A stretch of 64,000 bases of DNA from Phaeosaccion multiseriatum (GCA_965112735.1 OZ218961.1:1674001-1738000), one strand, 5' to 3'; positions 4,134-47,959 are shown, counted from the stretch's first letter. The notes: generated by a model not told the origin, from the letters alone. Translations and numbers: made by a program.

Positions 4134-4194
4134 GAAAAGCTTTTCTTTCGAAAGACCAAGACTAGAGAAAGAACTCATTACGTTGGCTACATGC

Positions 4195-4302
4195 ATGGAT
4201 AGCTCTGTTAAGGACTTAAACAGCAAAGCCAGCGATCTTCATATCTGGGACTTCGGCGAAGAAGAAGCCAACATGGCAAAGAAGAAGTCGGAGTCAAAGA
4301 AA

Positions 4303-4349
<47 letters not shown>

Positions 4350-7300
4350 GAAAGCCGCCTCGGACTCCTCAGACGACAATGGTTCAGCAGATGCGGCAAC
4401 GAATGAGGCTGCAGCTGATGAGGGGAAGGAAGGGGGTGAAGCTGGGAACGAATCTGATGAGGACAACAACGGAGATGGAGAATCTTCATCGGACCACGGA
4501 TCTGGCTCTTCATCCGGTGACGAAGGTGGTAAACGAATGTCTGCCCCTTCTGACGGATCTCAGCAGTCGTTGATAACCCCAACAATGACTGCAGCTTCCC
4601 ATGTTCCCGTGATCATGGGAAACACTGTAGAGTGCCCTAAGCTTCCTAAGGCCAAAAGCACTTTGCACACTCATTCTCAGTATGGGGACTATCATCACGT
4701 CTATTGGGCGTACTTGAGGCAGCTGGATGGCATTGAAGCTAAGCTGCGTCCAAACCCCGTACCCCTGAGTGCTCTTCTCCCTGAATCCAAGCTCCAAGCG
4801 CTTTGCATGGAACATGGTCCTCAAGGACGAACTCAAGCCTTCTTGTTAGAGTTTCTTCGCTCTTGTGCTGAACCTACCGCTGCTGAGGGCACTGGCTCAA
4901 AGTTCCAAGCCGACTTGCGAGGTGTCAAGCTGTGGGATGTGTCTGGTAACACTCAGTCGAATGGCACCGGCACTATCTTGGCCACAATCTCTGAGGCCAT
5001 GAACACACACGGAGTGCGTTCGCAGTACTTTGATGACAATCATCAGCAGGTTAGTCGGGAGGGTACCAAACTCTTGACTACCACCTTGATCAATGCCTGC
5101 CACACTGTTCCTGGTCTGAAGGACCATCTCAATAGTCACTTTCGGCTCAAGAACGACACGCTGAAGACTTGGACTGCCTTTGTCCCTGAGTGGAAAGAGC
5201 AGATCCAGACGTTTCTTCATGTCTATCGCAGCATGTCTACTGCGGTCAAGCATGAGATTTTGCCTACTTTGGAGCAGATTGCTGAGAAGCATCACCCCAA
5301 CAAGTCTAAGAAGCAACTCAACTCTGACAAGGAGCACTCTCGACAGAAGAAGCAAGCAGCGCAAGACCGCAAGCGGTCTGCCCATGCCTCTTCCTCTGAT
5401 TCCTCCCCTCCAGGCGAGAAGGAGCCTAAGAAGCTCAAGCCTGATCAGCCTCAGCGACAGCCACGCATCTGCTTTGGATGTCAAAGTCCGGATCACAGCA
5501 TTTACAGCTGTCCCAAGGTCACCTCAGAAGCGGATCGTCGCAAAATCATGGCTGACAAGGGACTACCATGGAATCCTCCTAAGAAGGGCAAGAAGAAGGT
5601 GAGTTCTGTCTCCTCTTCTGATGCTCTTGACTCGGTGTCTGAAACTCAAACTGATGGCACCATTTCTCTCTTCTCTGCTTCTCCCACTTCTTTGCATGCT
5701 CTTGCCATGGGCACAGATATGAAGAAGATGACCATCGATTGCATGGTGGACACAGGAGCAGAGACCTTTTGCCTTTTGCCCCTCCCAGTGGCAGAGAGCA
5801 TGATCGCGGAAGGTATGGATGTGCAACTTGTCACTCTACCCAAACCCGTGCAGCTCCAACCCTTTGGTCAGAGCTCAACTCAGGTCATTGTGCAACAGCT
5901 TACTGGAATTCATTTCCACATCCAAACTGAAGCTGGACCTGTCTCTTCGCTTGCACTGCCCCCTCTCTCTGCTTTGCTATATCAGCCTCGCGAGGGAGAA
6001 ACAGCAATGTTTTACTTGGGCAAACGTCTTGCACACAAACTGGGACTCAAACTGCCTCGTGAACAGCTGAAGGAAGAAGCTGAGAGGCAGGCTGCGCGGG
6101 CAGGCTCTGATGTGCCTCAAGAACTGCGCCACTCGACTGCCACTACTGCTGAAGCAGCGACAGTGAAAGTCAGTTCTCTCCTGCAGTCTTGTACTACTGA
6201 AGAAGCTCTGCCAGCCCAGCTTGATTCGACAAGCGTCAATTTCGATATAGACAACTGGGACTCTTTCATGGATGAGGTATATCAACCACTGTATACTAGC
6301 ACTGAGGTCTTTCACATAGCCTCGGCCACATTCGACTCTCAAAGTCGGGTTGGAACTCAAACTAATGAACCCTTTTCCAGCTACGATGATCCTCTACCCG
6401 AGGTGTCCGACTCTCCATGTCTTGAAGAAAATCTCATCAAGCAAAGTCTCCTTCCCATCGTAGAGAAAGCTGCATTAAACGGCTTCACTGACTCAGACGC
6501 GCTCTATGAGGTTCTCACCTCCCATCCTCAAGTGTGGCGAAGCAAAGTGCTTATGCACGATCCACCGGCCAAGGTAGATCCCATGGTCATTCGACTCAAG
6601 GAGGGAGCGGAACCCATCTGTCAACTTCCCATCTACCAATCGGGAGCTCGGAGAGACTTCCTCAAAGACTTCACCGATCAACTGACACAGTTCGGGTACC
6701 ACTACGCGAACCCTCAAGCTGTGTGGGCTAGCCGTGCCTTCTGCATCGCCAAGCCGGGCAAACCAGGCCAATTTCGGCAAGTGGCCGACTATCAAGAGGT
6801 CAATATGCGCACCCTTCGCTCGCGCTTCCCCATGCCAAACCTTAGCGAAATTTGCGCTAGGATGAGGGGGGCTCGCTTCTTTTGTGAGCTAGACCTCGCC
6901 AACATGTTTTGGCAACTCCCTTTGGCTCTCCAAAGCCAGGAGATTCTGACCTACTGCACTCCGGATGGGAAATTCACTCCCACCAGAGTCACTCAAGGCA
7001 TTCTCAATGCCAGCGAGTTTGCTCAGAGCACTCTGTCCAAGTGCCTCAGCGAGCACTTTGGCACCAACCTCGTCACTTGGATCGACAACATTACCATTTG
7101 GGCACACACGGAGGAGGAGTTCCGCTCCATTCTCCAGTCTGTGCTTGATGCTCTCGCCAAGGCTGGCTTCAAGCTTGGCCTCTCTGGCATCTCTCTAGGG
7201 AACTCTCAGAAGTTCTGTGGCAAGATCTATGACGGGGAAGGGGTTAAGCATGACCCTGCCAAGATCCAGGGCTTACTCGACCTCGAGCCACCTCAAAATG

Positions 7301-9768
7301 GGGCTGAGCTCATTCAATTCACTGCTGCATGTGGTTGGATGAGAGACAGCATTCCCGAATTTGCACGCATCGTCGCTCCTCTTTTGGAGCTGCAACACAG
7401 CGTCTTCAACAAGGCAGCGGCCAATCGCCAACAGCGTCGCCATCCTGAAACTGCCTCTACTGCAACTCCTCGCACAAAGCGTGTTGCTCGCTCCATCTCC
7501 CTCTCTTCTGTGGGGTGGGGCCCTACACATACGGCCGCCTTTCAAGAGATGAATGACGCGCTGGCTACTCAGACCAAGCTTGCTTATCCTGATCCCGACA
7601 AGGCCCGCTGTATCTTTCCAGATGCAAGCAACCCTCACTGGGGCAATGTGGTCACTCAGATTCCTACAGAGGACTTAGGCAAGCCAGTGGCCCAACAACG
7701 TCATGAACCTCTTGCTTGGCTCAGCGGTAGTTATACCGGCGCCCAGTGCAACTATGCCACCATCGACAAGGAGGCTTTTGCTATTTTGCAAGTCTTTGAG
7801 CGCCTCCCGTGGCTAGTCTCTGGGGTGCATCTCTTCATCTACACTGATCATCGCAACCTACAGTATTGCTTCAGGCCGAGCAGCATCATCAGCGATGTGC
7901 ACAAGCCTTCACGCGAGCGCTTACAGCGTTGGTCAGTCTTTCTTTCGGGCTTCGACTACGAAATTGCCCACTTGAGCGGAGAATTGAATGTGTGGGGTGA
8001 TATCATGTCGCGCTTCCGCTCACTCCCCAACTCTCCACCTGTCTCTGTCGATCCTTCTAGTGATGACACAGTGCACGTGGCAGCCCTGACGCGCAGCTTC
8101 GCTCCGGGTGCTATTCATGACTCTATGGACAGTGACTTCCTATGGCCCTCCATGGATGAGCTACGCTCTTCACAAGCAGCTGCTCAAGGAGACCTCACTC
8201 TTGAGGACCTCGCCAAGGCCCAAAGTCTCAAGTCCATTGTTCTGGATCCAATCCAAAACGTTCTTGTCATTCCCCTTTCGGAAACCTCCAACCCAATTTG
8301 GGTACCCAATGACGACATTGACCTACAGGTCCGACTTGCAGTTATCGCCCATCAAGGGTCTGCAGGCCATCGTGCCATTGACGTCACTCTGACAGTCCTT
8401 TCTGAGCGCTTCTACTGGAGCACAATGGCAAACAATGTTCAGAGCTTTGTCAATCATTGTCTTCATTGCCTTACCAACTCTAGTGGCCACCGCATTCCGC
8501 GACCACTCCGTGGATCAGTGCACCCCACCAAGCCTAACCAGATGATTCATTTTGATTTCGTCCACATGCATGACTTGGGCTGCACCACCTTGCCATATCT
8601 TCTCGTCATTCAAGACGCCTTCAGTGGTTACACCATGCTCAATGAGTGTGCCACCCCTACAGCGGACGCCGCAGTCAGCGGACTGATGCGATGGTTCAGC
8701 ACCTTTGGTGTGGTAACCAAATGGCAAAGCGACCGTGGTAGTCACTTCCTCAACCATGTGATGAAACGCTTAGCAACTGAGCTTCGCGCCCTTCATCGAT
8801 TCTCTGCCCCTTACTCTCCTTGGAGCAATGGCTTGGCAGAGCGAGCGGTTCGCACTACAGTTTCTGTGTATCGCTCTCTTCTCTCGGAGTTTAGAATCTC
8901 CCCTGACGACTACAATCTACTTACACCTCTTGTGCAAGCTGCTATCAATACCACGATCAGCTCCACACGCAAAGAAACACCTCTCTACTTGCACACTGGT
9001 CTACGCTCGACGACACCTCTTGATATCGTCTTGCAACGAGGCGACTCCTTTGACGTCAACTTTCAGTCCACTTCGATCACTCCAGAGCAACTCCAAACTT
9101 ATGGAGCACAGCTACAAGCCGTTTTGGACGACAGACATGCTGCAGTGGCTGCTCGCTTAGAGCACTCTCGAGCGACGGCTCGCACTCGCCACAACAGACG
9201 TCTGGAACTGACCTCTCTCGGACACCAGCATCGTAGGGAAATGGCCATCTCGGCTGACCTCAATTATGAGGGCCTCTACATGCCGGGCATTTATGTTCTT
9301 GTTGCTTCTAACAGCCGCTACTCCAAGCTTTCCGGAGTCTGGCAAGGCCCCTATCGTGTACTCGAGGAGATTGACACCCTCGTTTACAAAGTGGAACATC
9401 TTGTTTCTAAGCAAACTTCTGAGGTACATGCTTGTCGCTTACGCTACTATGCCGATCAGCATCTCAACGTCACTACTCAACTCTTGCACCAGATCTCACA
9501 TGACTCTGCTTCTTGGGTTGTCTCATCCTTCACGGATCTTCAACGACCGTCGCAAGGCGATTCCTGGAAGGTCTACACCTTCTGGAAGGGCTTCAATGCC
9601 GCTGACGCTACATGGGAACCTCTGGAAGTCATGCACGACGATGTTCCTGCACTTCTTAAGGACTTTCTTTCTTCTTTCCCACGTCGCACACTGGCGGAGG
9701 ACGCTAAACGCTTCCTTCGGTCTCGTGGCATCTCGACTCGACGTCGCCCACGGACAGGCCGCCGATAA
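4195..9768 (+). CDS. Gag-Pol polyprotein (zinc knuckle, protease, RT, RNase H, integrase, chromodomain)
   Basis: CFGCQSPDHSIYSC knuckle; VDTGA protease; ELDLANMFWQ and WIDN RT motifs; PDAS/DKEAFAI/TDHRNL RNase H; H-x6-H...CLHC and D,D,E integrase; WQGPY; C-terminal FWKGFNAADATWEPLE chromodomain. First in-frame ATG is 4195 (alternative 4273). Confidence 0.95.
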
Positions 9769-27914: not shown

Positions 27915-28370
27915 GGAGGGAGAAGAGAAGTAGAGGATGATAAGGGATTAAAATGAGCAGAAGGACACACGGGGGGGGGAAACAAAAAGGGTAAGGGAGA
28001 ATGGGGAGACGAGAGAGAAGAAGAAGAAGAAGAAGAAGAAGAAGAGAGAGAGAGAGAGAGAGAGAGAAGAAGAAGAAGAAGAAGCTGCGGGCGTGTATGC
28101 GTATGTGTGTGTATAGTGTGTATGTGGGGCGGCCGCCGGCGGACAAATCTCACAAACGAGTGGTATATGACCAACATGCTAACAAACTCTTCCCCCCTTC
28201 CTTTCCCTTTTCCCGCTTCCCTCCATTGTCTGGACTAGCATGAATAAGTTCTCGGAGATACCAAAGGAGCATAGAGGCGGTAATAGGTGCTATGCAGCAG
28301 CAAGAGAAGCGTGCAAAGAGGAGGGAAACAAAGGAATTAAGAAATAGTGAGTCCAACTGCCGGTGACGAG

Positions 28371-31300
28371 ATGAAACCTTCGGCCGCTGGAGGAGGAGGA
28401 AAGAGCGAGCCTGTGCAAGTGATTGTACGGGTGCGCGGGGAGCCCCCTCTTCAAGAACTCAAACCGCTCAATGAGGCTGCGGCGCAGAATGGACCCACTC
28501 TGCTGGTGAAGGATGCCAACACCGTGGCGCTTCTCCCTCTATATGGACATTCCGGAGTGGGTTCGGGCAGCAAGAACTCGAACAGCAAGGTCAAGCCCCC
28601 GACTGAGACCAAGCTGTTCTCCTTCGACAGGGTGCTCAATACAAAGGCGGTCCAGGAGGATGTATATGACATTGCCCGCCCGCTCGTGGTGGGCGCGGTC
28701 GAGGGCTACAACAGTACCATCTTCGCCTATGGTCACACGTCTTCGGGTAAGACATACACCATGGCCGGGACCCCCGCTCAGCCTGGCATAATCGCTCGGA
28801 CCGTTCAGGACGTGTTTGCCATGATTGGGAGAGTCACGGCGGCGGATCCGGATGCGATTTTCTTCGTGCGCATGAGCTACGTTGAGTTGTACAATAACAA
28901 CTTTAGGAATCTTCTGGATGGGGTGGCGGAGCGGCTAGGTAAGCAGTGGGAGCGTCAGCGCACTCCTCGAGCGCCGCGAGAGCGGCCCGCGCACAGGACA
29001 CCAGACGGGCGGCAGCAGCACCAGCACCAGCACCAGCAGCAGGACGACGCGGAGCAGCAGCAGCAGCCGCAGCAGGACGTGGAGGCCGGCTCGAAGTTTG
29101 ACAGTCCGTCTTCTACGCACCCGAATCTTGTGCGGAATGGTAAGATCGAAGTGCGTGAAGACAAGACGTCCGGGGTGTTTCTGTCCGGACCCAATCTCCG
29201 CAACACCGTCACCAGCGCAGAGGAAGCCATGCAGCTGGTCGCGGCTGGCGATGTGCACAGAGCGGTTGGCTTGACTAACTGCAACGAGCACTCCAGTCGG
29301 AGCCACGCCATCCTTACGATCCACATTGAGAGCCAAAAGGGCAGGGGCGAAGACGTGCAAGCGCGGCTGGGCAAGATTCATCTGGTGGACTTGGCTGGCT
29401 CTGAGCGACTGACGCTCTCCAAGGCACAAGGCGACCGACTGGTGGAGGCTCAGAGTATCAACCTCAGTCTGTCTTCGCTGGGCAATGTCCTCGCTGGCCT
29501 CTCTCGGAGGGCGATGGACGAGTCGGACAGGGCCCCGATCCCCTACCGCGACTCCAAACTCACCTTCTTTCTCAAGGACAGCTTGGGTGGGAACAGCAAG
29601 ACCCTCATGATTGCCACCCTTAGGACCCTGGCGGAGTACCATCGGCAGAACCTCGTCACTCTGCTGTACGCGAGCCGTGCCAAGAGGATTCAAAACCAGA
29701 CGCATCTCAACATGGACACCAAGGGCGAGTCCGACATTCGCCTTGTGGCCAGGCAGATCGAGGACCTCAAACACCGCCTGCAGCAGCGCACGATGGCTCT
29801 GAACGAATTGTCCATGGTCAACGAGGACAATGCTGACCTGAGGGCGCGGCTGCAGCGCATGAGCAATACCAATACTGAGGAGAAAGCGGAGCTGGAGTCA
29901 AGACTGGCGGTGAGTGAGTTCTTCAAACAAGAGCTGCTCTGCGTTGCTTGGGGCCTCGTTCTCTCTTTACTACCACTAGATTGGCACTCATTAACTGGAT
30001 GGTCTATCTCTTTCTCTCTCTCTCTCTCTCTCTTATCGTCATCGAAAATCCCCAAACACCCGTCCCCTCTTCTTCCCCATGGACTGACAGGGTGTTATCC
30101 ATAGCCAGAGGGGGCAAATGGAGCAACAGCGGGACCAGTTTACCTCTCTACAAAGCCGATTGCACACAGAACTAGGGGCGTATCAGCAGCGTTGCGAAGA
30201 GCAGCAGCGCCAGATTGAAGCGCTGCAGGAGCACATTGGACAGGCGCCAAAAGCGCTGCGGCCTGGCGAAGCGGAGGAGATGCAGCGCGTCCTGGAGGCA
30301 TGGCAACGCCACGCCACAGCCGCGCAGGAGGAACTCAACGCGAATGTGGGCAAACTGCAGGAGAGTGTCCGTCGAGAGGCAGCGCTTGTTGGGGTGCTGC
30401 GGCTGGTGGGCCGTCAGCTGGGGGTGGATGAGGGCGCCATGGAGGGACAGACAGAAGAAGAAATGCTGGCTGCCTTGCTTCAGAAGATCACTCGAGCAGA
30501 GGAATGTCGCCAGCAGACCGACAAGGACGTACTCAGAAGTGCAGAGCAGCTTGCGGAGGCCCGTCAAGCTTCTGAACGTGCCATTTCGGAAATGCGTAGT
30601 GAGATGGGAGAAGAAAGCGCCGCTTTGAGCGGAAGGGTTCAGGGCTTGGAGGAGGAGCTCGAGACTCTCCGAAAGACCGCTGCTACTCGACTGGAGGGGG
30701 CTGTGAAGGAGGCTGTAAGCGTGGGAAGAGCCGCGGAAAGGGCTGAGCTGAACACATCGCGTACGGCGCTGGAGCAGGAGAACGAAGCCCTCAAGGCTAA
30801 GATGCACACTTTCGAAGGCATGCTCAGCGGCGTGGCAACCGACACCAAGAGACTAGTGGCAGGCAAAGACTTGAAGTTGGCAGAGATGGAGAAACGCTGC
30901 AGCATGCTCGAAGCGAGTAGGAAGGAGGAGGAGCTCAGGCACAGCACCAAGCTTGCTGCTGTGATAGACGAGTGTGCCCAAGCGAAGGAAAGAGATCTCC
31001 GCGTGGCACACGAAGCTCTGCAAGAGTCCTTCTCTCAAGAGCAAGAGTCCCTGATTAGGGGGGCGGTACTGGAGCGGGAGGCGGAGCTTCTCGCTGAGTT
31101 TGAGACCAAGTCTGCGGAGCTTCTCGCTGAGTTTGAGACCACGTCTGCGAGAGAGGCATTGGAGCACAAGAGGGAGCTGCAGCACGCCCTCGCACTCGCG
31201 TTGGAGGAGCGACGCGTAGAAGTGGAAGCGGTACAGGGGAAGTGTAAGTCTCTCGCAAAAGCGCTGGAGGTACAAGGCGCAAATGCGGAAAATACCGAGG

Positions 31301-40607: not shown

Positions 40608-42272
40608 TCATTCGCTGCTTATAAATCCATCCACGAGATTTCCAATCTCGTAAGCTGTGGCCGCACAGCAGCCACCCAAAAGCAGCATCTCTAATCCTGA
40701 CCAATACCAGGCTCGTGTGCCGAACTGGCTCTTGACTGCTCCCATGCTGAACAGCGCGCACCCTGTGAGTGAGTGAGTGAGTGAGTGAGTGAATGTGGCG
40801 GGGAGGGGAAGGGAGGCGAAAAAAAGGGGGCAAGTCCGGAAACAAACGGCGTCAGAAGGCGATGTTTGTAGTGGGCTGTGCCAGGCCCGGCCTCTTCCGC
40901 GCTTCTTCTCACCCGTCACCATGCAGGCAATCACGAAGAGGCTGTGCGGGGTCATGTCTGGGAAGAGTAAAGGGAAGACTGCGTACCCCAGGAGCGGCAG
41001 TGCGCCGAAGCCCGCGAATGAACAAAACATGATGACCTGCAGCAGAGACAAATTACACGCACGCACGCACGCACACGGGGAGGGGAGGGGAGCGAAGGGT
41101 TGCCAAGGGTGAGAACCCCGAGCCAGAGAGTAGCTTGAGCGATTGCGTTTGCGCTTGCCCAGGTTGTATGTGTACTTACTCCTTCTCGTACGATGCTTCC
41201 CTCGTCCTCGTCGGGCACCTGCAAGCCCAGCTCCTCCACCATCATGAGGTTGATAAAGAACTCGTCGTACTTGGCCATCTTATTGATGACGTCAGAAGCG
41301 TCTTCCCGTGACATCCCTCTCTCCGTGAAAATCTCCACCTGTTGCCCCACCCACGCCAGACCAGACAAGAAATTAGAACAGACCCAGTGTTGGGCGAAGT
41401 GAGCTAGCTCATTCAACCCCTCTCTGTGTCTGCCTCACCATCTCCATGATCTCGCCTTCCCGGTGGTTCTTTAGCTCCCATTCCTCCCGCCTCTTCTCGG
41501 CCAGAATATACTCGTTGTGCGCCTTGCTACTGAGGTACTCCCCCACACCTGGCCAAGAGGCAGGGCGAAGACGGTACGGTGTGCGGTTGGGGCATGTCGG
41601 GCAGCCAGCCAGCCTTACCTTCGACCAAGACAACAGCCACAAGCAAGACTTACCCATGCTCAATGCGTCGGCAAAGATGTTTGAGAAGCCCAAAACCAGA
41701 ACCGCGTTGATGTCGAGCCCCCCTCCCGCTGCTCCAGCTACAATGGCAAAACTTGTGAGAATGCCATCCAGACCCCCAAAAATCATAGGTTTGACGTAGC
41801 TTCCGCCTACCAGCGAGTGAGTGAGTGAGTGAGCGAGAGAATCAGTGGCCCATGGACGAGGGACAAGGGAACATAGCAGCGAGAATACCACAGGCAAAGG
41901 TACGGACGCAGAAAACAAAACGCGTGAGGGCCTCCCATACCCATATCCAAGTTGTTGGTCACACAAGAGAATGAATGGGTCTGCGCTGGCCCGGTCGGGG
42001 GCCACAACTTCGGGGGCCACAACTCCAATAGCACTGGAACAGCAAACTCTGTCGTGGGTGCCCTGCCTTGGTCCGCGGAGACCGGGCAAATCACCACAAG
42101 GAAAGAAGCTTGGGATTCCACACTCACCAGCAGAGTGGTCTTCGTCGTGCAGCATGCCTGCCCGCGAGTCGTGCAGCAGCCGGGAGGCCTCTGCGTCTCG
42201 GTTCTGATAGGCACCTTTAATTTCTTTGTCATTTGCATGCAAGAGAGGCGCTTGTTCGCCATTGAGGCTCAT
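40608..42272 (-). CDS. VIT1: VIT1/CCC1 family vacuolar iron/manganese transporter, multi-exon
   Basis: IFGGLDGILTSFAIVAG, NIFADALSMG, GEYLS, EKRREEWE, MMVEELG, FGALPLLGY. Confidence 0.93.
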
Positions 42273-42791
42273 CGTGGCCCGCCTCGAAACCACTCTCACA
42301 GCACCCACTCCCTATTCGGCGCGAGGGAGGAGCAGCAACGGAAAAAGAGACACGGTGAGTCACTGGGGGGCTGAGGAAGGAGGGCGTCCAAGGATGCAGA
42401 TGAAGTGGGAAGCTTTGGGTGCCGGCAGGGGCAGGAGATCCAACATGTGTTGCATTTGTTTCTTGTTCCAGCTATCCCAACCAAGGCTCTCCCCAAGTTG
42501 ACTTCAATTCCCGGACTGCTGTCAAGGCAGCTGCTGCTGCGCACCCCCTTCCTGCTGCTGCTTACCTCCTCTCCTCCACGCTCCTGACCGTGCTCTGACG
42601 CCCGACTTTCCTGAAGTGCACGCTCTGGGGCGAGAAGCAAGAGGCTGTAGTTTCTGCGTGGTGGCGCTGGTTGGGGGGGGGGAATATGTCAACAAATCAG
42701 ATCGCCCACGCCTTGTATCTTCACCTCCCCCGTGCTCCTCCCTCTATTGGGCGGACCAGCTGCAGCAGCAGAAGTTGCTGGCGCAGCAGCC

Positions 42792-45700
42792 ATGTCTCTC
42801 GCAGAGGAGGACGAGGAGGGCAGACAGAGGAGCGAGCAGCAGCAGCGTCGGGAGGGCAGGGGCCACGAGCGGAAGCGCCTTCGGCAGGGAGAGGACAGGA
42901 CGCGGAGTCCGAGCCCCTTCACCAAGGAGCGGCGCTCCTGGGGCACCAAGGTCTGGCAGACCTTCGAGCTGATCCGCCACAACGCGCCATCCACGCAGAG
43001 CTCCACCACCACCGCGGAGAGCGACGGGGAGGATGAGGATGGGGCGTGCAGCTGTCCCAGTCCTGCTGTGCCTGGAGGGGCGACATGTGTGGATGAGACA
43101 TGCGTAAACTATGCCATGAGCACGGAGTGCCCGAAGGGTGGCTGCCATCCAGGCTGCCGCAACCAGCGAATACAGAGAAGAGAAGGTGTTCCACTGGACG
43201 TGTTCTCTGCTGGGGGTAAGGGCTACGGCTTGAGGCTGAAGGAGGACGTTGCGGCGGGGCAGTTTATCATCGAGTACGTGGGGGAGATTATCGGGCCCAA
43301 GCTCTTGGCCAAGCGCATGGCCGCTACTGGCGGGGGTATGAAGCGCCTGTACGTGATGCAACTGTCCAAGAACCGCTACCTCGATGCTCGCTACAAGGGG
43401 TGTGTGGCGCGTTTCATTAATCACTCTTGCGAGCCCACGGCGAGGCTGGACAGGTGGCGTGCGGCGGGCAGGACGCGAACGGCAGTGTTCTCTCTGCGGG
43501 ACTTGAAGGCCGGAGAGGAGCTCACCTTCGACTACCAGTGGGAAGTACACCCCTCTCGGAAGAAGACGCCTTGCCTTTGCGGCACCCCGTCGTGCAGGTA
43601 CACTACTTGTCAGTGCACAGTGCAGCGGGCCCAGTACCACGTCTCTCAAGTCAAGGCAATTCCTCTCCCCCCCCCCCAAACGCTGCTTTTCTTTGTTGCG
43701 GACTGACTTGGCAGGAAATTCATTGAGGCGAACGAGGGGGCGGTGCCGTCGGCCATTGCCAATTCCATCAAGGGGAGGTGGAGGGTGCCAAGAGAGGAGG
43801 ACCTTGCGGACCCGAGGAAGATTGTTGGGCACAGAGTGCGAGTGTTGTGGGAGGGTAACTACATGTTCTTCTGCGCGCAGGTGATGGACTACTCGGCGGC
43901 CAAGGAGGCCTACGATCTGCGCTATGAGGAGGATGGGGAGGAGGCAGAGGAGAAGTTGCAGCTCAGTGGCGGCAACAAGTGGGAGATCTTTGAGCGCTGC
44001 GGGGAGGAAGAGTCCATGATGATTGCCAAGAAGGCGGGTCTGGTCCGCAGCATGTCCACAGGGGCTTACCATGGGGACTCTGACGAGGACGACGAGTTCG
44101 ACAGCAATCGGCGGAAGAGCAGGCTCAATTTGCTGCTACCTGTGGCCCCAGCTCCGATCAAAGCAAAGGGCCGGAAAATTATGAAACTCTTCGTCGCGCC
44201 GGGCCGAGAGATTTCGGATCTGATGCAGCGACAGAGGGAGGCTGTTAGTCGCATCCAAGCGCGGACGGGGTGCTTCGTGCAGATGGATGTGGTGCGCGGG
44301 GTGGAGCCGACGGCAGCTGCCGCGACCGCCAAGGCGCAGTACAAAGTGATCCGCTGTATCGGCACCAAGGAGCAGGTGGAGGCTGCAATAGCAGCGGTGG
44401 GTGGGGAGCGAGTGAACGTGACAAACCTCGACGACTGGCTGCACTTGAGGATGAGGGAAGAGGCGAAGCACATGGAGGCAGGGAGGGATGATCCTGCGAA
44501 GCTCCGGGTTCGGAAGCGGTGGTGCATGGGCTACGACTGGCATAGCTTCTGCCCCGCAGACCTGGAGGGCATCATCAAGGGGCCCGGCAACGTGGAGCTG
44601 AGGAACGCCCTGCAGGTAGAGGAGCAAAAAAGTCTTACGAGGGTGGGAGAACGGGCTCGATTTGTCTCTTTTACTGGCCCTTTCTCCGCTGCCACACTAA
44701 ATCCCAATTCGCCGTGTTTTGGGCAGGTGCTGGAAAGCGTCGGTGACCGCATCAAGGCCAAGGAGAAGCAGCGCTTGTCTCGGGATGTGACTTTGCACTC
44801 CGCCGTTCTCATTTGCCGCTACCTCGCCCTGGCACACTCCCCGAGGCTCGAGGCTGAGCGCAAGGCCATGCGCAAGTCCCAGGCCCGACTCGGGCTCTTC
44901 GAGGCCACCATCGCGTGCATTGCCCTGGCCAATAAGGCACTGAAAGTGCGTGCAGCTGCCAAGCCCATGAAGAGGGGCGTCTTGTTGTCAGCGGCGTACT
45001 CGGTGCAGTTTCCTGGCCGGGAGGTTGAAATCGGATCGGAGGAAGCTCGGCAGTGGGAGGTGAGGATGGACATGCATAGCGCACAGCCCCGCCCTGCACG
45101 TCTGTTCGTGAGCTTCACCCTCCTTGTCGGTGCGCTCTCCTGCTGACCTCCTCCCAGGTGAAGCTTGGCGCGACGGAAGTGGGCATTCTGCCAATGCTGG
45201 GCTGGGATACACATCTCGCTAACCCGTTTGCGCTCTACAAGAAGAAGCGCGAGAGTGGGGAGCTCACTCCGGACCAGTACCAGAAACGCTGTGACTTGCT
45301 CTTGGACAGTGCCGAGCAAGGCTGTTTGGTGTGGCTCAAGTACGCCCCTATGGACATCATCTCCGCCAATCACCTCTTGGCCGTGGCCTGTGAGAAGGGC
45401 GTGCCCGGCCTGATGAATTTGACTGTTGCCTGGGCGCAGCTGCAGCCCAAGTACCAGCTCTACGCTCAGATTTGCGGAGAGCTTGCGGCTGTGGTGTTGC
45501 CCGAGCAATCCCCTGAGTACGCGGCGTGCTTGACTCTCGTAAGGCCCGATGCCTCTCTACAGGCCATGGCGGAAGACGCTTCCTTGCGACTCATGCCTCG
45601 CGGTGTGGACTGCGCGGGGCGGCGTGGCCTCGACACGACGGACTTTGTGTCCATGCATCGGGGAAAGGGGGCGGGGGGGGGGGGGTCCGGCAGAGGGAGT

Positions 45701-47769
45701 GCGTCCAAAGTGGTGCGAGCGAGCGTTTCCTTGGAGACGCTGCAAGAGGCGGGACTGCGACCCGTGACGCACGGCTTCAGATCCAATGGGCATGCTTCAG
45801 AGCTGCACGACGGGCTAGTGGACGTGTACCTTCAGGTGAGAGTAAATGTGATTCACCTTCTCGCCCCGCTCAGGCCCTCGCACATACACTCTCTCTCTCT
45901 CTCTCTCTCTTTAACCCGCCAAAACCTGCTCTATTTTCTTCCAAATAGAAATGGCCAAGCGAGGGAAAAAAAGAGAGTGGCGAGTGCGGTTTGAGCGGGA
46001 GCGCACTGAGTGAGCTGACTCTCATGCAGGACTTGCACAGCGCCACGGCGGCTTCGGAAGGAAATAGGAGTGTGCTAATGGCCTTTGCGGTGGTGCACGG
46101 TGTGGGGAGCGAGGCTGCTGCTGCTGCTGCTGCTTCTGCCGCTTCAGCTGCTGCGGCGGCTTCAAGCGAGCAGAGAGAAGACGGCGCAGAAGCAGAGGAC
46201 GGCTCGGACACGTCTGCCGTGGACACGGAGCTGTTGCGCTCCAACTACCTACTCGTCGAGCCGGTGCCCTACTCGCTGCAAGACGCCATCAGAGTCTATC
46301 GGAAGAGGCGCTTACCTGCGCCTTTGCTGCGCGCCGTTGCGAGGCAGCTGCTCAACGGGCTGGCGCTTGTGCACGAGCGGCAAGTGGTGCTGAAAGGGCT
46401 CGACACGGAACACATTTACGTGACAGAGCACGAGACGCTGAAGCTCGGCAACTTCGGATCTGCGGCCATGTGCGTGCCTTCTTCGTCTGCGCCCAAGAAA
46501 GAAAAGGAGAGCGAGCAAAGCGCCAAGAAGAGGAAGAAGGTAAGAGAGAGATGCGACACGCAAACACCGGCCTACTGTCGCTCGCCCATGCTCGCCCTTC
46601 CACAGCTTGGCCGACTCCTCCTCCTTTGACAAGCTCGCTCGCCTCCTCCGCCGCCGCCGCCGCCCTTTCACAGGCCACGGCCAAGCTCGTCGCCAAGCTA
46701 GAGAAGGAAGGGGAGCCCTCCGCCAGGGCCCTCCTGTCCATGGCGCCCGAGCTCATGCTGGGCAGCAGCGAGCCCACCCCCGCCTGCGACCTTTGGAGCC
46801 TGGGCTGCATTCTCTTTGTGCTGGCCACGGGAAAGCCTCTCTTCATAGGGCGGACGCGGAAGCAGCAGCTGGCCCATGTCTTTAAGGTGACTGTTGCATG
46901 TAGAGTCCTCCCTCCCTCCCGACCGGTGCCTTGGCAGTCGACACACCTCTCTGAATCCCACGCACTACAAATCTTCCGCCCCTTCACCCCGTCGAAATAG
47001 GTGTGCGGCAGTATCAGCAAGACGCTCTGGCCAGCAGGTGCGGACCTCCCTCTGTACAAGCAGTGCAAGCCTGTGGACAAGGACGGAAGCACCCTTCGCT
47101 GCAAGCCTCGGCTGCGCAAGGTGCTGTGTCCGGAAGACCACAGCTTAAAGCTCGACGCAGATTTGGTGGAGCTGCTGTGCGGGTTGCTGGAGCTGGACCC
47201 GGCGGCGCGGTGGAGTGCCGCGGCCGGCCTGGAGAGCAGCTTTGTTAGGAGCGAGCAGGGGGGGGGGGGGGGGCAACTCCGAGACGCCTGGCGCGGCCTT
47301 TATTCGCTGCTGGACGGTCAAGAGAACGGAAGTAGCGACGGGGTGGAGGGTGGACGGGTGACGACAGAGGGTAATGCTGCGGCGGTGGGTGGGCATGTTG
47401 AGCAGCCGAGGCAGGGCTCGCAGGTGGAGGGAAGAGGCAACAATAGACGCGACTCAGAGGCGCGCAGGCACAGCAGGAGCAGGAGCAGGAGCAGGAGCGA
47501 CAGCCGCGGCAGGAGAGGAGAGAAGCACGCTCGGAGCCGGAGCAGAAGTCGGACGAGATGGAGCACCACTAGCAGCAGCAGCACCAGCAGGAGAAGCGCG
47601 AGTCCCAATGGGGTGAGTTCGACGGTTCGCTCTTTCCACCTCTCAACGTGCTTGACACTGACTCTCTCTGCCGCTTGTGCCCGTATCCCTTTCCTTTTAC
47701 CCATTGAACTGCTTCGCTTCGCAGCGGAGGTCGAACGGCTCTTTCTCCAACTCCTATTCCCGGCGGTGA
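42792..47769 (+). CDS. Set2-like histone methyltransferase fused to Tudor-like, KH-like, cyclin, CDK-like (pseudo)kinase and RS domains; exons 42792-43597, 43715-45059, 45158-45835, 45949-46539, 46674-46886, 47001-47612, 47725-47769
   Basis: All six GT-AG introns preserve frame (4290 nt, 1429 aa). SET motifs EYVGEI, ARFINHSCEP, GEELTFDY, CLCGTPSC; cyclin-box helices; kinase APE, DLWSLGCI, QQLAHVFKVCGS, LLELDPAARWSA. Confidence 0.88.
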
Positions 47770-47959
47770 TGCGCGTACAAGCGAGCCCTTGGAGCAAGCA
47801 AAGCGGCCTTAGTCTTTTAAAAAAATAAATAAATAAGCATCCCTCTTCATTTTTAATCCTCATCTGAGGATTGGAAGTGGAGTTTTGCTTTATTTGCCTC
47901 GGTGGGCACGAGACACCTGTCTTTGGATGTTGAGCCTTGAGGAGGATGCTCGGCCGTCT

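Follow-up and report, generated by a model that had tools for sequence, protein, structure and literature searches.

Can a histone methyltransferase, a cyclin and a cyclin-dependent kinase (CDK) share one polypeptide chain and, if so, what would such a chain do? The question is raised by a locus at positions 42792-47769 of a 64,000-nucleotide (nt) stretch of the Phaeosaccion multiseriatum genome (GCA_965112735.1 OZ218961.1:1674001-1738000), this whole stretch being called the window below. In yeast and animals, the kinases of the carboxy-terminal domain (CTD) of RNA polymerase II (Bur1/Ctk1, CDK9/12) and the methyltransferase Set2/SETD2 act sequentially on the transcribing polymerase, and proteins that are fused in nature are often ones that cooperate elsewhere. 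Our analysis makes it likely that the locus encodes a chain of ~1429 amino acids (aa) composed of a KMT3-type AWS-SET-postSET core, a Tudor domain, a KH-type domain, a cyclin box, a pseudo-CDK and an arginine/serine-rich (RS) tail, and that this protein is a writer of the type that methylates lysine 36 of histone H3 (H3K36), equipped with a non-catalytic docking or regulatory module.

Gene model and relatives in stramenopiles

The first issue is whether these parts belong to one gene. On the plus strand, the open reading frame (ORF) map of 42792-47769 consists of six long pieces and a short terminal piece that join at GT..AG, so that the coding locus comprises seven exons and six introns (117, 98, 113, 134, 114 and 112 nt for introns 1 to 6, a range of 98-134 nt). 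The initial annotation of this DNA had proposed a seven-exon frame of 1429 aa, and we reproduced it, with GT..AG borders for all six introns and a single terminal stop. The gene is laid out as follows.

Exon 1, 42792..43597, plus strand: start codon, acidic/basic N-terminus, AWS (~43086-43181), SET (~43221-43538) and the start of the post-SET CxCxxxxC motif (43572-43597)
Intron 1, 43598..43714, plus strand: 117 nt, GT..AG, within the post-SET motif
Exon 2, 43715..45059, plus strand: one ORF with the end of post-SET, Tudor (~43773-43997), KH-type fold (~44175-44405), RxRWCxGxDW (~44394-44425) and helices 1-3 of cyclin box 1 (from ~44778)
Intron 2, 45060..45157, plus strand: 98 nt, GT..AG, within cyclin box 1
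Exon 3, 45158..45835, plus strand: one ORF with helices 4-5 of cyclin box 1 (~45158-45250), a putative second box with weak support (~45251-45520), a Gly-rich linker and the kinase N-lobe (from ~45707)
Intron 3, 45836..45948, plus strand: 113 nt, GT..AG, within the kinase N-lobe, with an in-frame alternative acceptor at 46029
Exon 4, 45949..46539, plus strand: PSTAIRE-like helix, Ala/acidic insert and kinase core with a degenerate catalytic loop, VVLKGLDTEH (versus HRDLKPxN), and NFG (versus DFG)
Exon 5, 46674..46886, plus strand: end of the activation segment (EP...MAPE) and kinase C-lobe helices alpha-F and alpha-G
Exon 6, 47001..47612, plus strand: remainder of the CMGC-type C-lobe to ~47240, a Gly run and the Arg/Ser-rich tail from ~47440
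Exon 7, 47725..47769, plus strand: 15 codons and TGA, end of the RS tail, predicted from the GT..AG pair and the frame alone

The sequence argues that 42792-47769 is one real seven-exon gene and that the fusion is not an artefact of the gene model. First, none of the introns separates two domains: post-SET is interrupted by intron 1, cyclin box 1 by intron 2 and the kinase by introns 3-5, while exon 2 by itself spans post-SET, Tudor, KH and cyclin box, and the passage from cyclin region to kinase N-lobe is contained in exon 3. Second, an exhaustive HMMER search with exon 2 led to full-length relatives that combine SET and Pkinase in one protein, as follows.

P0002, 1261 aa: Chrysoparadoxa australica (CAM9626605.1)
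P0003, 1296 aa: JGI metagenome 3300068088, also with AWS, Tudor and a near-threshold Cyclin_N match
P0020, 1410 aa: NCBI assembly GCA_024449665.1, with three sister clusters

Both P0020 and P0003 are encoded by one uninterrupted ORF (4233 and 3891 nt, respectively), and their fusion is therefore independent of any splicing inference. Third, the spliced window protein is colinear with its relatives from AWS through the kinase C-lobe. Taken together, the introns inside domains, the single-ORF relatives and the colinear alignment make two separate genes very unlikely. Two or more genes (SET-Tudor-KH and cyclin-kinase), or one locus that mainly gives separate products through internal promoters or processing, would fit the facts that the public sequencing runs of the locus are DNA, that the exon chain is predicted, and that the homologous Phaeothamnion locus is annotated as three models. 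Set against exons that each bridge several domains as one ORF, homologues that are single uninterrupted ORFs and a SET-kinase fusion already reported in three Phytophthora species (Judelson and Ah-Fong, PMC3019232), such an arrangement appears extremely improbable.

The individual splice junctions are mostly fixed by homology, which runs flush over junctions 1, 2, 3 and 5; junction 4 sits in a variable insert. At junction 1, CGTPSCR meets KFIE, flush with CLCxxxCRG(F/Y/T)(V/L/I)E in the homologues; at junction 2, ...EEARQWE followed by VKLGATEVGILPMLGWD... aligns with them without gaps; and at junction 5, ...QQLAHVFK followed by VCGSISKTLWP is flush with their ...QLGQVYKSLGTPSESNWP. For exon 4, the alternative acceptor at 46029 (exon from 46030, protein of 1402 aa) was rejected in favour of 45948, because the 27 residues that the latter adds hold the helix LSGSALSELTLMQDLH, conserved in all homologues; the acceptor at 45948 retains the conserved alpha-C-like helix SALSELTLMQDLH. 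In the region of exon 7, the homologues vary too much in their C-terminal tails for a comparison, and retention of intron 6 would extend the frame to a stop at 47826-47828. Within the coding sequence, poly-G runs at 45675-45690 and 47258-47275 encode Gly runs, at which the contigs of the public DNA runs break; the contig of one DNA run is 3 nt shorter at 47258, an in-frame length difference.

The initial annotation had suspected that related architectures exist in other stramenopiles, and this is borne out both by the homologues in ochrophytes and by the Phytophthora report. The gene is a member of a conserved family of stramenopiles that keeps this order of parts and probably includes PITG_14137 of Phytophthora infestans. 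In the ESM Atlas, a cluster of 67 members carries Pkinase in 100% and SET in 97%. In C. australica, tblastn detects AWS and the N-terminal part of SET (L005:3231-3869, CAXMZZ020000684.1) upstream of the annotated start of CAM9626605.1, so that the deposited 1261-aa model is N-terminally truncated. In Phaeothamnion confervicola (L003:263-3574, CAXNAC020001778.1), the region from cyclin to kinase is colinear with the window protein within 3.3 kb and annotated as three partial proteins; the SET part is missing because the contig starts inside the gene. In its kinase C-lobe, the metagenomic P0003 (L002:6700-7153) no longer follows the family alignment and ends early, followed by a small ORF at 6950-7153, which suggests an unrecognised intron or a frameshift near the 3' end of that gene. 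Word-indexed searches with P0020 or the family alignment returned, apart from the P0020 group, only unrelated plant RUNKEL kinases.

The methyltransferase core, the Tudor barrel and the KH-type fold

The N-terminal part had been read as a Set2-type AWS-SET-postSET unit, and this reading is supported. In exon 1, Pfam gives a full-length SET match (75.8 bits, 1-105 of 105) and an AWS match (24.1 bits), and the best phmmer matches of the SET region in the PDB are Chaetomium Set2, ASH1L, NSD1/2, yeast Set2 and SETD2 (E 3e-38 to 1e-30). The catalytic and S-adenosylmethionine-binding motifs are intact and conserved in homologues, namely GKGYGLR (GxG), RFINHSCEP (NHSC) and GEELTFDYQW (with the ELTFDY tyrosine), as is the post-SET cysteine motif CLCGTPSC, whose CxCxxxxC is split by intron 1. 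No SRI or WW domain was found in any exon piece of the window (E up to 0.1-1), a search that a highly divergent SRI could escape, or in P0002, P0003 and P0020 at E up to 0.01. By its sequence, the SET part is best classed as a KMT3-type (Set2/ASH1/NSD) core and not as a canonical Set2 orthologue.

For the region that follows, an AlphaFold2 model of window:43716-44705 was used in fold searches. Model residues 20-94 have a predicted local distance difference test (pLDDT) score above 90, and their best fold match is the Tudor domain of Arabidopsis RDM15, an H3K4me1 reader (7de9_A; Z 9.5, root-mean-square deviation (rmsd) 1.3 A over 58/58 residues, TM by target 0.85, identity 26-28%). Further fold matches are the Tudor domains of PHF1 and PHF19 (H3K36me3 readers), TDRD3 and SMN, and phmmer finds PTM/DIR17-type multi-Tudor proteins down to E 7e-17. 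The model and the fold search thus confirm the Tudor-like domain of the initial annotation, at ~43773-43997; it contains aromatic residues (VLWEGNYMFF..., YDLRY).

The next part had been described as a KH-like RNA binder, of which the fold has held up better than the activity. Model residues 154-230 (pLDDT 67-92) adopt a beta-alpha-alpha-beta-beta-alpha fold that matches KH4 of FUBP1 (Z 8.9, 78/80 residues) and KH3 of hnRNP K (Z 8.7), as well as KH domains of PCBP, Nova and vigilin. Pfam KH_1 reaches 20.3 bits in the window, below the cut-off of 21.5, and 26.6 bits in a Discosporangium fragment (P0005). However, a GXXG loop is absent from every family member examined, the window having ...DLMQRQREAV..., modelled as one continuous helix. 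The model thus supports a KH-type fold, and RNA binding is doubtful because GXXG is missing. Between the KH-like fold and the cyclin box lies a motif, RxRWCxGxDW (window 44394-44425, residues ~535-545), that is conserved in several lineages; its R, R and W are invariant in our alignment A2, and model confidence there is low to middling.

The degenerate kinase, the cyclin region and their possible role

The claim of a CDK-like kinase stood in part. Pfam and PDB matches do identify a CMGC/CDK-like domain, but it is most probably not a working CTD kinase, the Asp residues of HRD and DFG being missing throughout the family. The Pfam Pkinase model scores 28.2 bits in exon 4, 35.7 bits in exon 5 (cut-off 31.7) and 73.6 bits in P0002. 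PDB matches of exon 4 include CDK2 and CDK4, and the best ones of exon 5 are GSK3-type kinases, CDK16 and CDK11B (E 8e-12 to 2e-9); the kinase of P0002 is closest to CDK3 and CDK2 (E 1e-21 to 1e-19), followed by PfPK5, CDK12 and CDK11. The N-lobe, which Pfam leaves unaligned, is assigned by within-family alignment alone. At the HRDLKPxN position, in the HMMER register against CDK2/CDK3, the window has LKGLDTEH and the homologues IRHLDPSQ, VRHLDPGM and VRSLDPTM; at the DFG position, the window has NFG and the homologues CLS, GLG and GLG. The catalytic HRD Asp and the DFG Asp are therefore missing in all members, the Lys and Asn of the catalytic loop are also replaced, and neither a Gly-rich loop nor an unambiguous beta-3 lysine is recognisable in the kinase domains of the family.

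What has been kept is the fold, the alpha-C glutamate, the APE motif and the CMGC-type C-lobe. The helix SALSELTLMQDLH is conserved in the family together with its glutamate, and resembles TAIREISLLKEL by eye only. Conservation is high: within the P0020 group the kinase core is the most conserved segment (91% identity, versus 86% for SET), and across four lineages identity is 37-38% for the kinase parts and 35% for cyclin box 1, well above the 14-24% of linkers. We regard the domain, on this sequence evidence, as a conserved pseudokinase under purifying selection and not a working CTD kinase, because the catalytic and Mg-binding aspartates are absent in every member. Some kinases without canonical residues are active, and the retained and well-conserved fold, alpha-C glutamate, APE and CMGC-type C-lobe could be taken to mean that this one, too, is atypical yet active through non-canonical residues, in which case the protein would both phosphorylate and methylate. 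This is very unlikely: the replacements of the aspartates differ by lineage (G/H/S in the catalytic loop, N/C/G in DFG), the catalytic-loop Lys and Asn are likewise replaced, the Gly-rich loop is unrecognisable and the beta-3 lysine ambiguous, and the Phytophthora member was scored inactive (PMC3019232).

Ten residues ahead of APE there is an invariant Glu-Pro that, counted without gaps, coincides with Thr160 of CDK2, although HMMER sets the loop gap differently; it could be a phosphomimic. As for the RS tail, direct reading of the sequence bears out the initial claim, with Arg/Ser repeats from ~47440. A similar tail is present in Chrysoparadoxa, and there is none in the P0020 group.

The cyclin region is the best-conserved non-catalytic block of the family. 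Its consensus, ...ATACLxLANKxLRARV...LLxxAYxVQFPGR...WExKLxxxExxVLxxLGFDxxLxDPF..., reads as cyclin-box helices 3-5 in family alignment A1, to which the window aligns without gaps. We modelled it from a 17-row alignment with P0020:570-835 as first row and the two pieces of the window included, and obtained a pLDDT of 70-92 over residues 1-125 and 58 overall. With this model, a structure search independent of Foldseek ranked cyclin T1 first (Z 14.0, rmsd 1.9 A, 108 residues), followed by cyclin L2 (12.8), Ctk2 (12.8), cyclin C (11.9) and cyclin K (11.2), then TFIIB-type cyclin folds, with unrelated folds from ~Z 6. In Foldseek, the 36 best rows are all transcription cyclins (T/L/K/C-type or Ctk2; E from 2.6e-3), and in a shape search of the ESM Atlas, Cyclin_N clusters rank first. 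The model thus indicates at least one cyclin box, closest to cyclins T/L/K/Ctk2. Two boxes had been proposed: the first, from 44778, is upheld by the alignment and the homologue model, whereas the second lacks structural support, being modelled as helical at a pLDDT below 50. The region of the second box is 22% conserved and aligns weakly to residues 131-240 of cyclin K, including the motif LKYAPMDIISANHLLA versus LQWEPEIIAVAVMYLA, and a second box is plausible but unproven. The initial annotation had also staked its reading on profile searches for both folds; the kinase is found by Pfam, whereas Cyclin_N stays below threshold and the cyclin fold emerges through structure search.

Several points weigh against our overall reading. 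The H3K36 specificity, the ligand of the Tudor domain and the link to RNA polymerase II or splicing are drawn from family resemblance, and contact between cyclin box and kinase within the chain is something we infer. The four public sequencing runs that contain the locus, all from one study, are DNA contigs that include the introns, so that splicing and the last exon are predicted from sequence; the sole joints in these runs are artefacts that arise from repeats, in the poly-G and RS-coding tracts. The KH-like region is 17% identical across lineages, hardly above linkers, and the region of the second cyclin box is hardly more conserved than linkers either. The cyclin assignment relies on a model of a homologue (P0020) with good confidence for box 1 only, and when the cyclin-like pieces of the window were searched directly by sequence, the PDB, Pfam and NCBIfam yielded no match. 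Cyclin_N is sub-threshold in P0003 (21.8 bits versus a cut-off of 23) and finds nothing in the window, and the family profile matches the PDB at E 0.17-1.3, though eight of the nine matches are to cyclin L1, K or Ctk2. The missing Pfam match in the window and the non-significant profile E-values would also suit a mere helical linker between KH and kinase, with the cyclin likeness that of a generic helical bundle; helical models often yield middling Z-scores, and the second half of this one is of low confidence. However, the top structure matches are all cyclins, then TFIIB, with unrelated folds appearing only near Z 6; the 36 best Foldseek rows, the top Atlas clusters and the sub-threshold sequence matches (L, K, Ctk2) all point to cyclins; and the motif A.ACL.LA.K ... 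E..VL..LGFD....DP fits cyclin-box helices 3-5. A mere linker is thus highly unlikely, and we retain a cyclin box in the proposed chain.

How might such a protein work? The SET core would be an active lysine methyltransferase, most likely for H3K36 or a similar lysine, and the Tudor domain may read a methyl-lysine mark, giving the protein an input from chromatin. The cyclin box and the dead kinase would form a CDK-cyclin-like pair within one chain, into which the PSTAIRE-like helix fits by eye, and this pair may act without phosphotransfer, as a docking or allosteric module. Because no SRI was detected, we propose that the pair may stand in for the customary connection with the transcribing polymerase, or with other CDK substrates or partners, and the RS tail may draw the protein to compartments rich in splicing factors. 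The transcription-elongation module of the initial annotation is, on this view, a putative function. A more specific version holds that cyclin box and dead CDK fold into a permanent, phosphotransfer-free pair that docks substrates (the CTD of RNA polymerase II or other) in place of SRI, and that H3K36-type methylation in stramenopiles is coupled to transcription in this way; we consider it rather unlikely as a whole.

These possibilities are of interest because a Set2-type writer here shares its chain with a cyclin box and a strongly conserved dead CDK-like domain, without a recognisable SRI. The family appears to span oomycetes, including major crop pathogens, and photosynthetic stramenopiles, and sequence databases have contained it since 2010 at the latest. 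It is a testable case of what a pseudokinase-cyclin pair might do without catalysis, it could reveal how H3K36-type methylation is targeted in a major, little-studied eukaryotic lineage, and the chain of writer, reader, cyclin and pseudo-CDK offers a good experimental handle.

Surrounding sequence and comparison with known systems

The 5' end of the gene is bounded by a minus-strand neighbour.

VIT-family iron transporter, 41409..42308, minus strand: upstream neighbour, Pfam VIT1 65 bits

The downstream neighbour is a minus-strand ORF without family match. Elsewhere in the window, 4183-9768 (plus strand) holds an 1861-aa ORF with reverse transcriptase, RNase H and integrase, apparently an intact polyprotein of a long terminal repeat retrotransposon. 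A large kinesin exon lies at 28347-30104 (plus strand; motor domain 292.8 bits), and, among named relatives, ochrophyte kinesins and animal KIF3 come closest. Its best named matches, in Phaeothamnion, Ochromonadaceae, Pelagophyceae and Sphacelaria, reach 48-68% identity, which places the source among the ochrophytes, without a close relative in the proteins searched, and agrees with the stramenopile origin assumed in the initial annotation.

The closest known system is PITG_14137 of P. infestans, in which a SET domain and an inactive CDK were reported in one protein (Judelson and Ah-Fong 2010, PMC3019232). In the supplement of that study it is classed as CMGC/CDK, with a length of 1501 aa, a kinase at 981-1341 marked 'bad' and SET as its accessory domain; the authors report orthologues in P. 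sojae and P. ramorum 'but not other species', and no cyclin, Tudor or KH domain is listed for it (PMC3019232). Both proteins have an N-terminal SET and a C-terminal inactive CMGC/CDK-like domain in one chain of ~1400-1500 aa, with similar placement of the kinase (981-1341 of 1501 versus ~900-1290 of 1429 in the window protein), and short motifs of the printed kinase correspond by eye, namely VYLQSWP/VYLQKWP (beta-3, VYLQxWP), APEVLLG and LRKTL/LRKVL. The kinase of P0020 differs from the printed PITG_14137 kinase sequence, so that P0020 is probably not from Phytophthora. The present analysis differs in identifying Tudor, KH-type and cyclin-box parts in the stretch from SET to kinase, and in adding ochrophyte members. 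Our literature search found no later paper on PITG_14137 and no functional study of the family. PsKMT3, the studied H3K36 enzyme of P. sojae, was rejected as the same gene, since it has an AWS-SET-PHD architecture and belongs to another clade; a kinase domain is unmentioned in its paper.

Comparison with better-known enzymes highlights similarities and differences. With Set2/SETD2, ASH1L and NSD, which are the best PDB sequence matches, the window protein has in common an AWS-SET-postSET core with its catalytic motifs; unlike Set2/SETD2, it has no detected SRI or WW and bears Tudor, KH-like, cyclin and pseudokinase parts instead. Among transcription CDK-cyclin pairs (CDK9-cyclin T, CDK12/13-cyclin K, CDK11-cyclin L and Ctk1-Ctk2), its cyclin box is most like T/L/K/Ctk2 and its kinase is CDK-like; CDK11/12/13 carry RS tails, as it does. 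The difference is that the window protein has both partners on one chain, the cyclin N-terminal to a dead kinase. CDK-like and cyclin domains in one polypeptide are also found in oomycete and ciliate CDKs with an integral C-terminal cyclin domain (the PITG_21617 group), predicted to be inactive through an Asp to Asn change (PMC3019232). That is, however, a different family, with kinase-then-cyclin order, strong Pfam cyclin matches and no SET. A SET domain joined to an inactive CDK is an architecture already known, though barely described, and hence not a new kind of system; what is new here is that the family also occurs in photosynthetic stramenopiles, along with the domains that lie between its SET and kinase parts.

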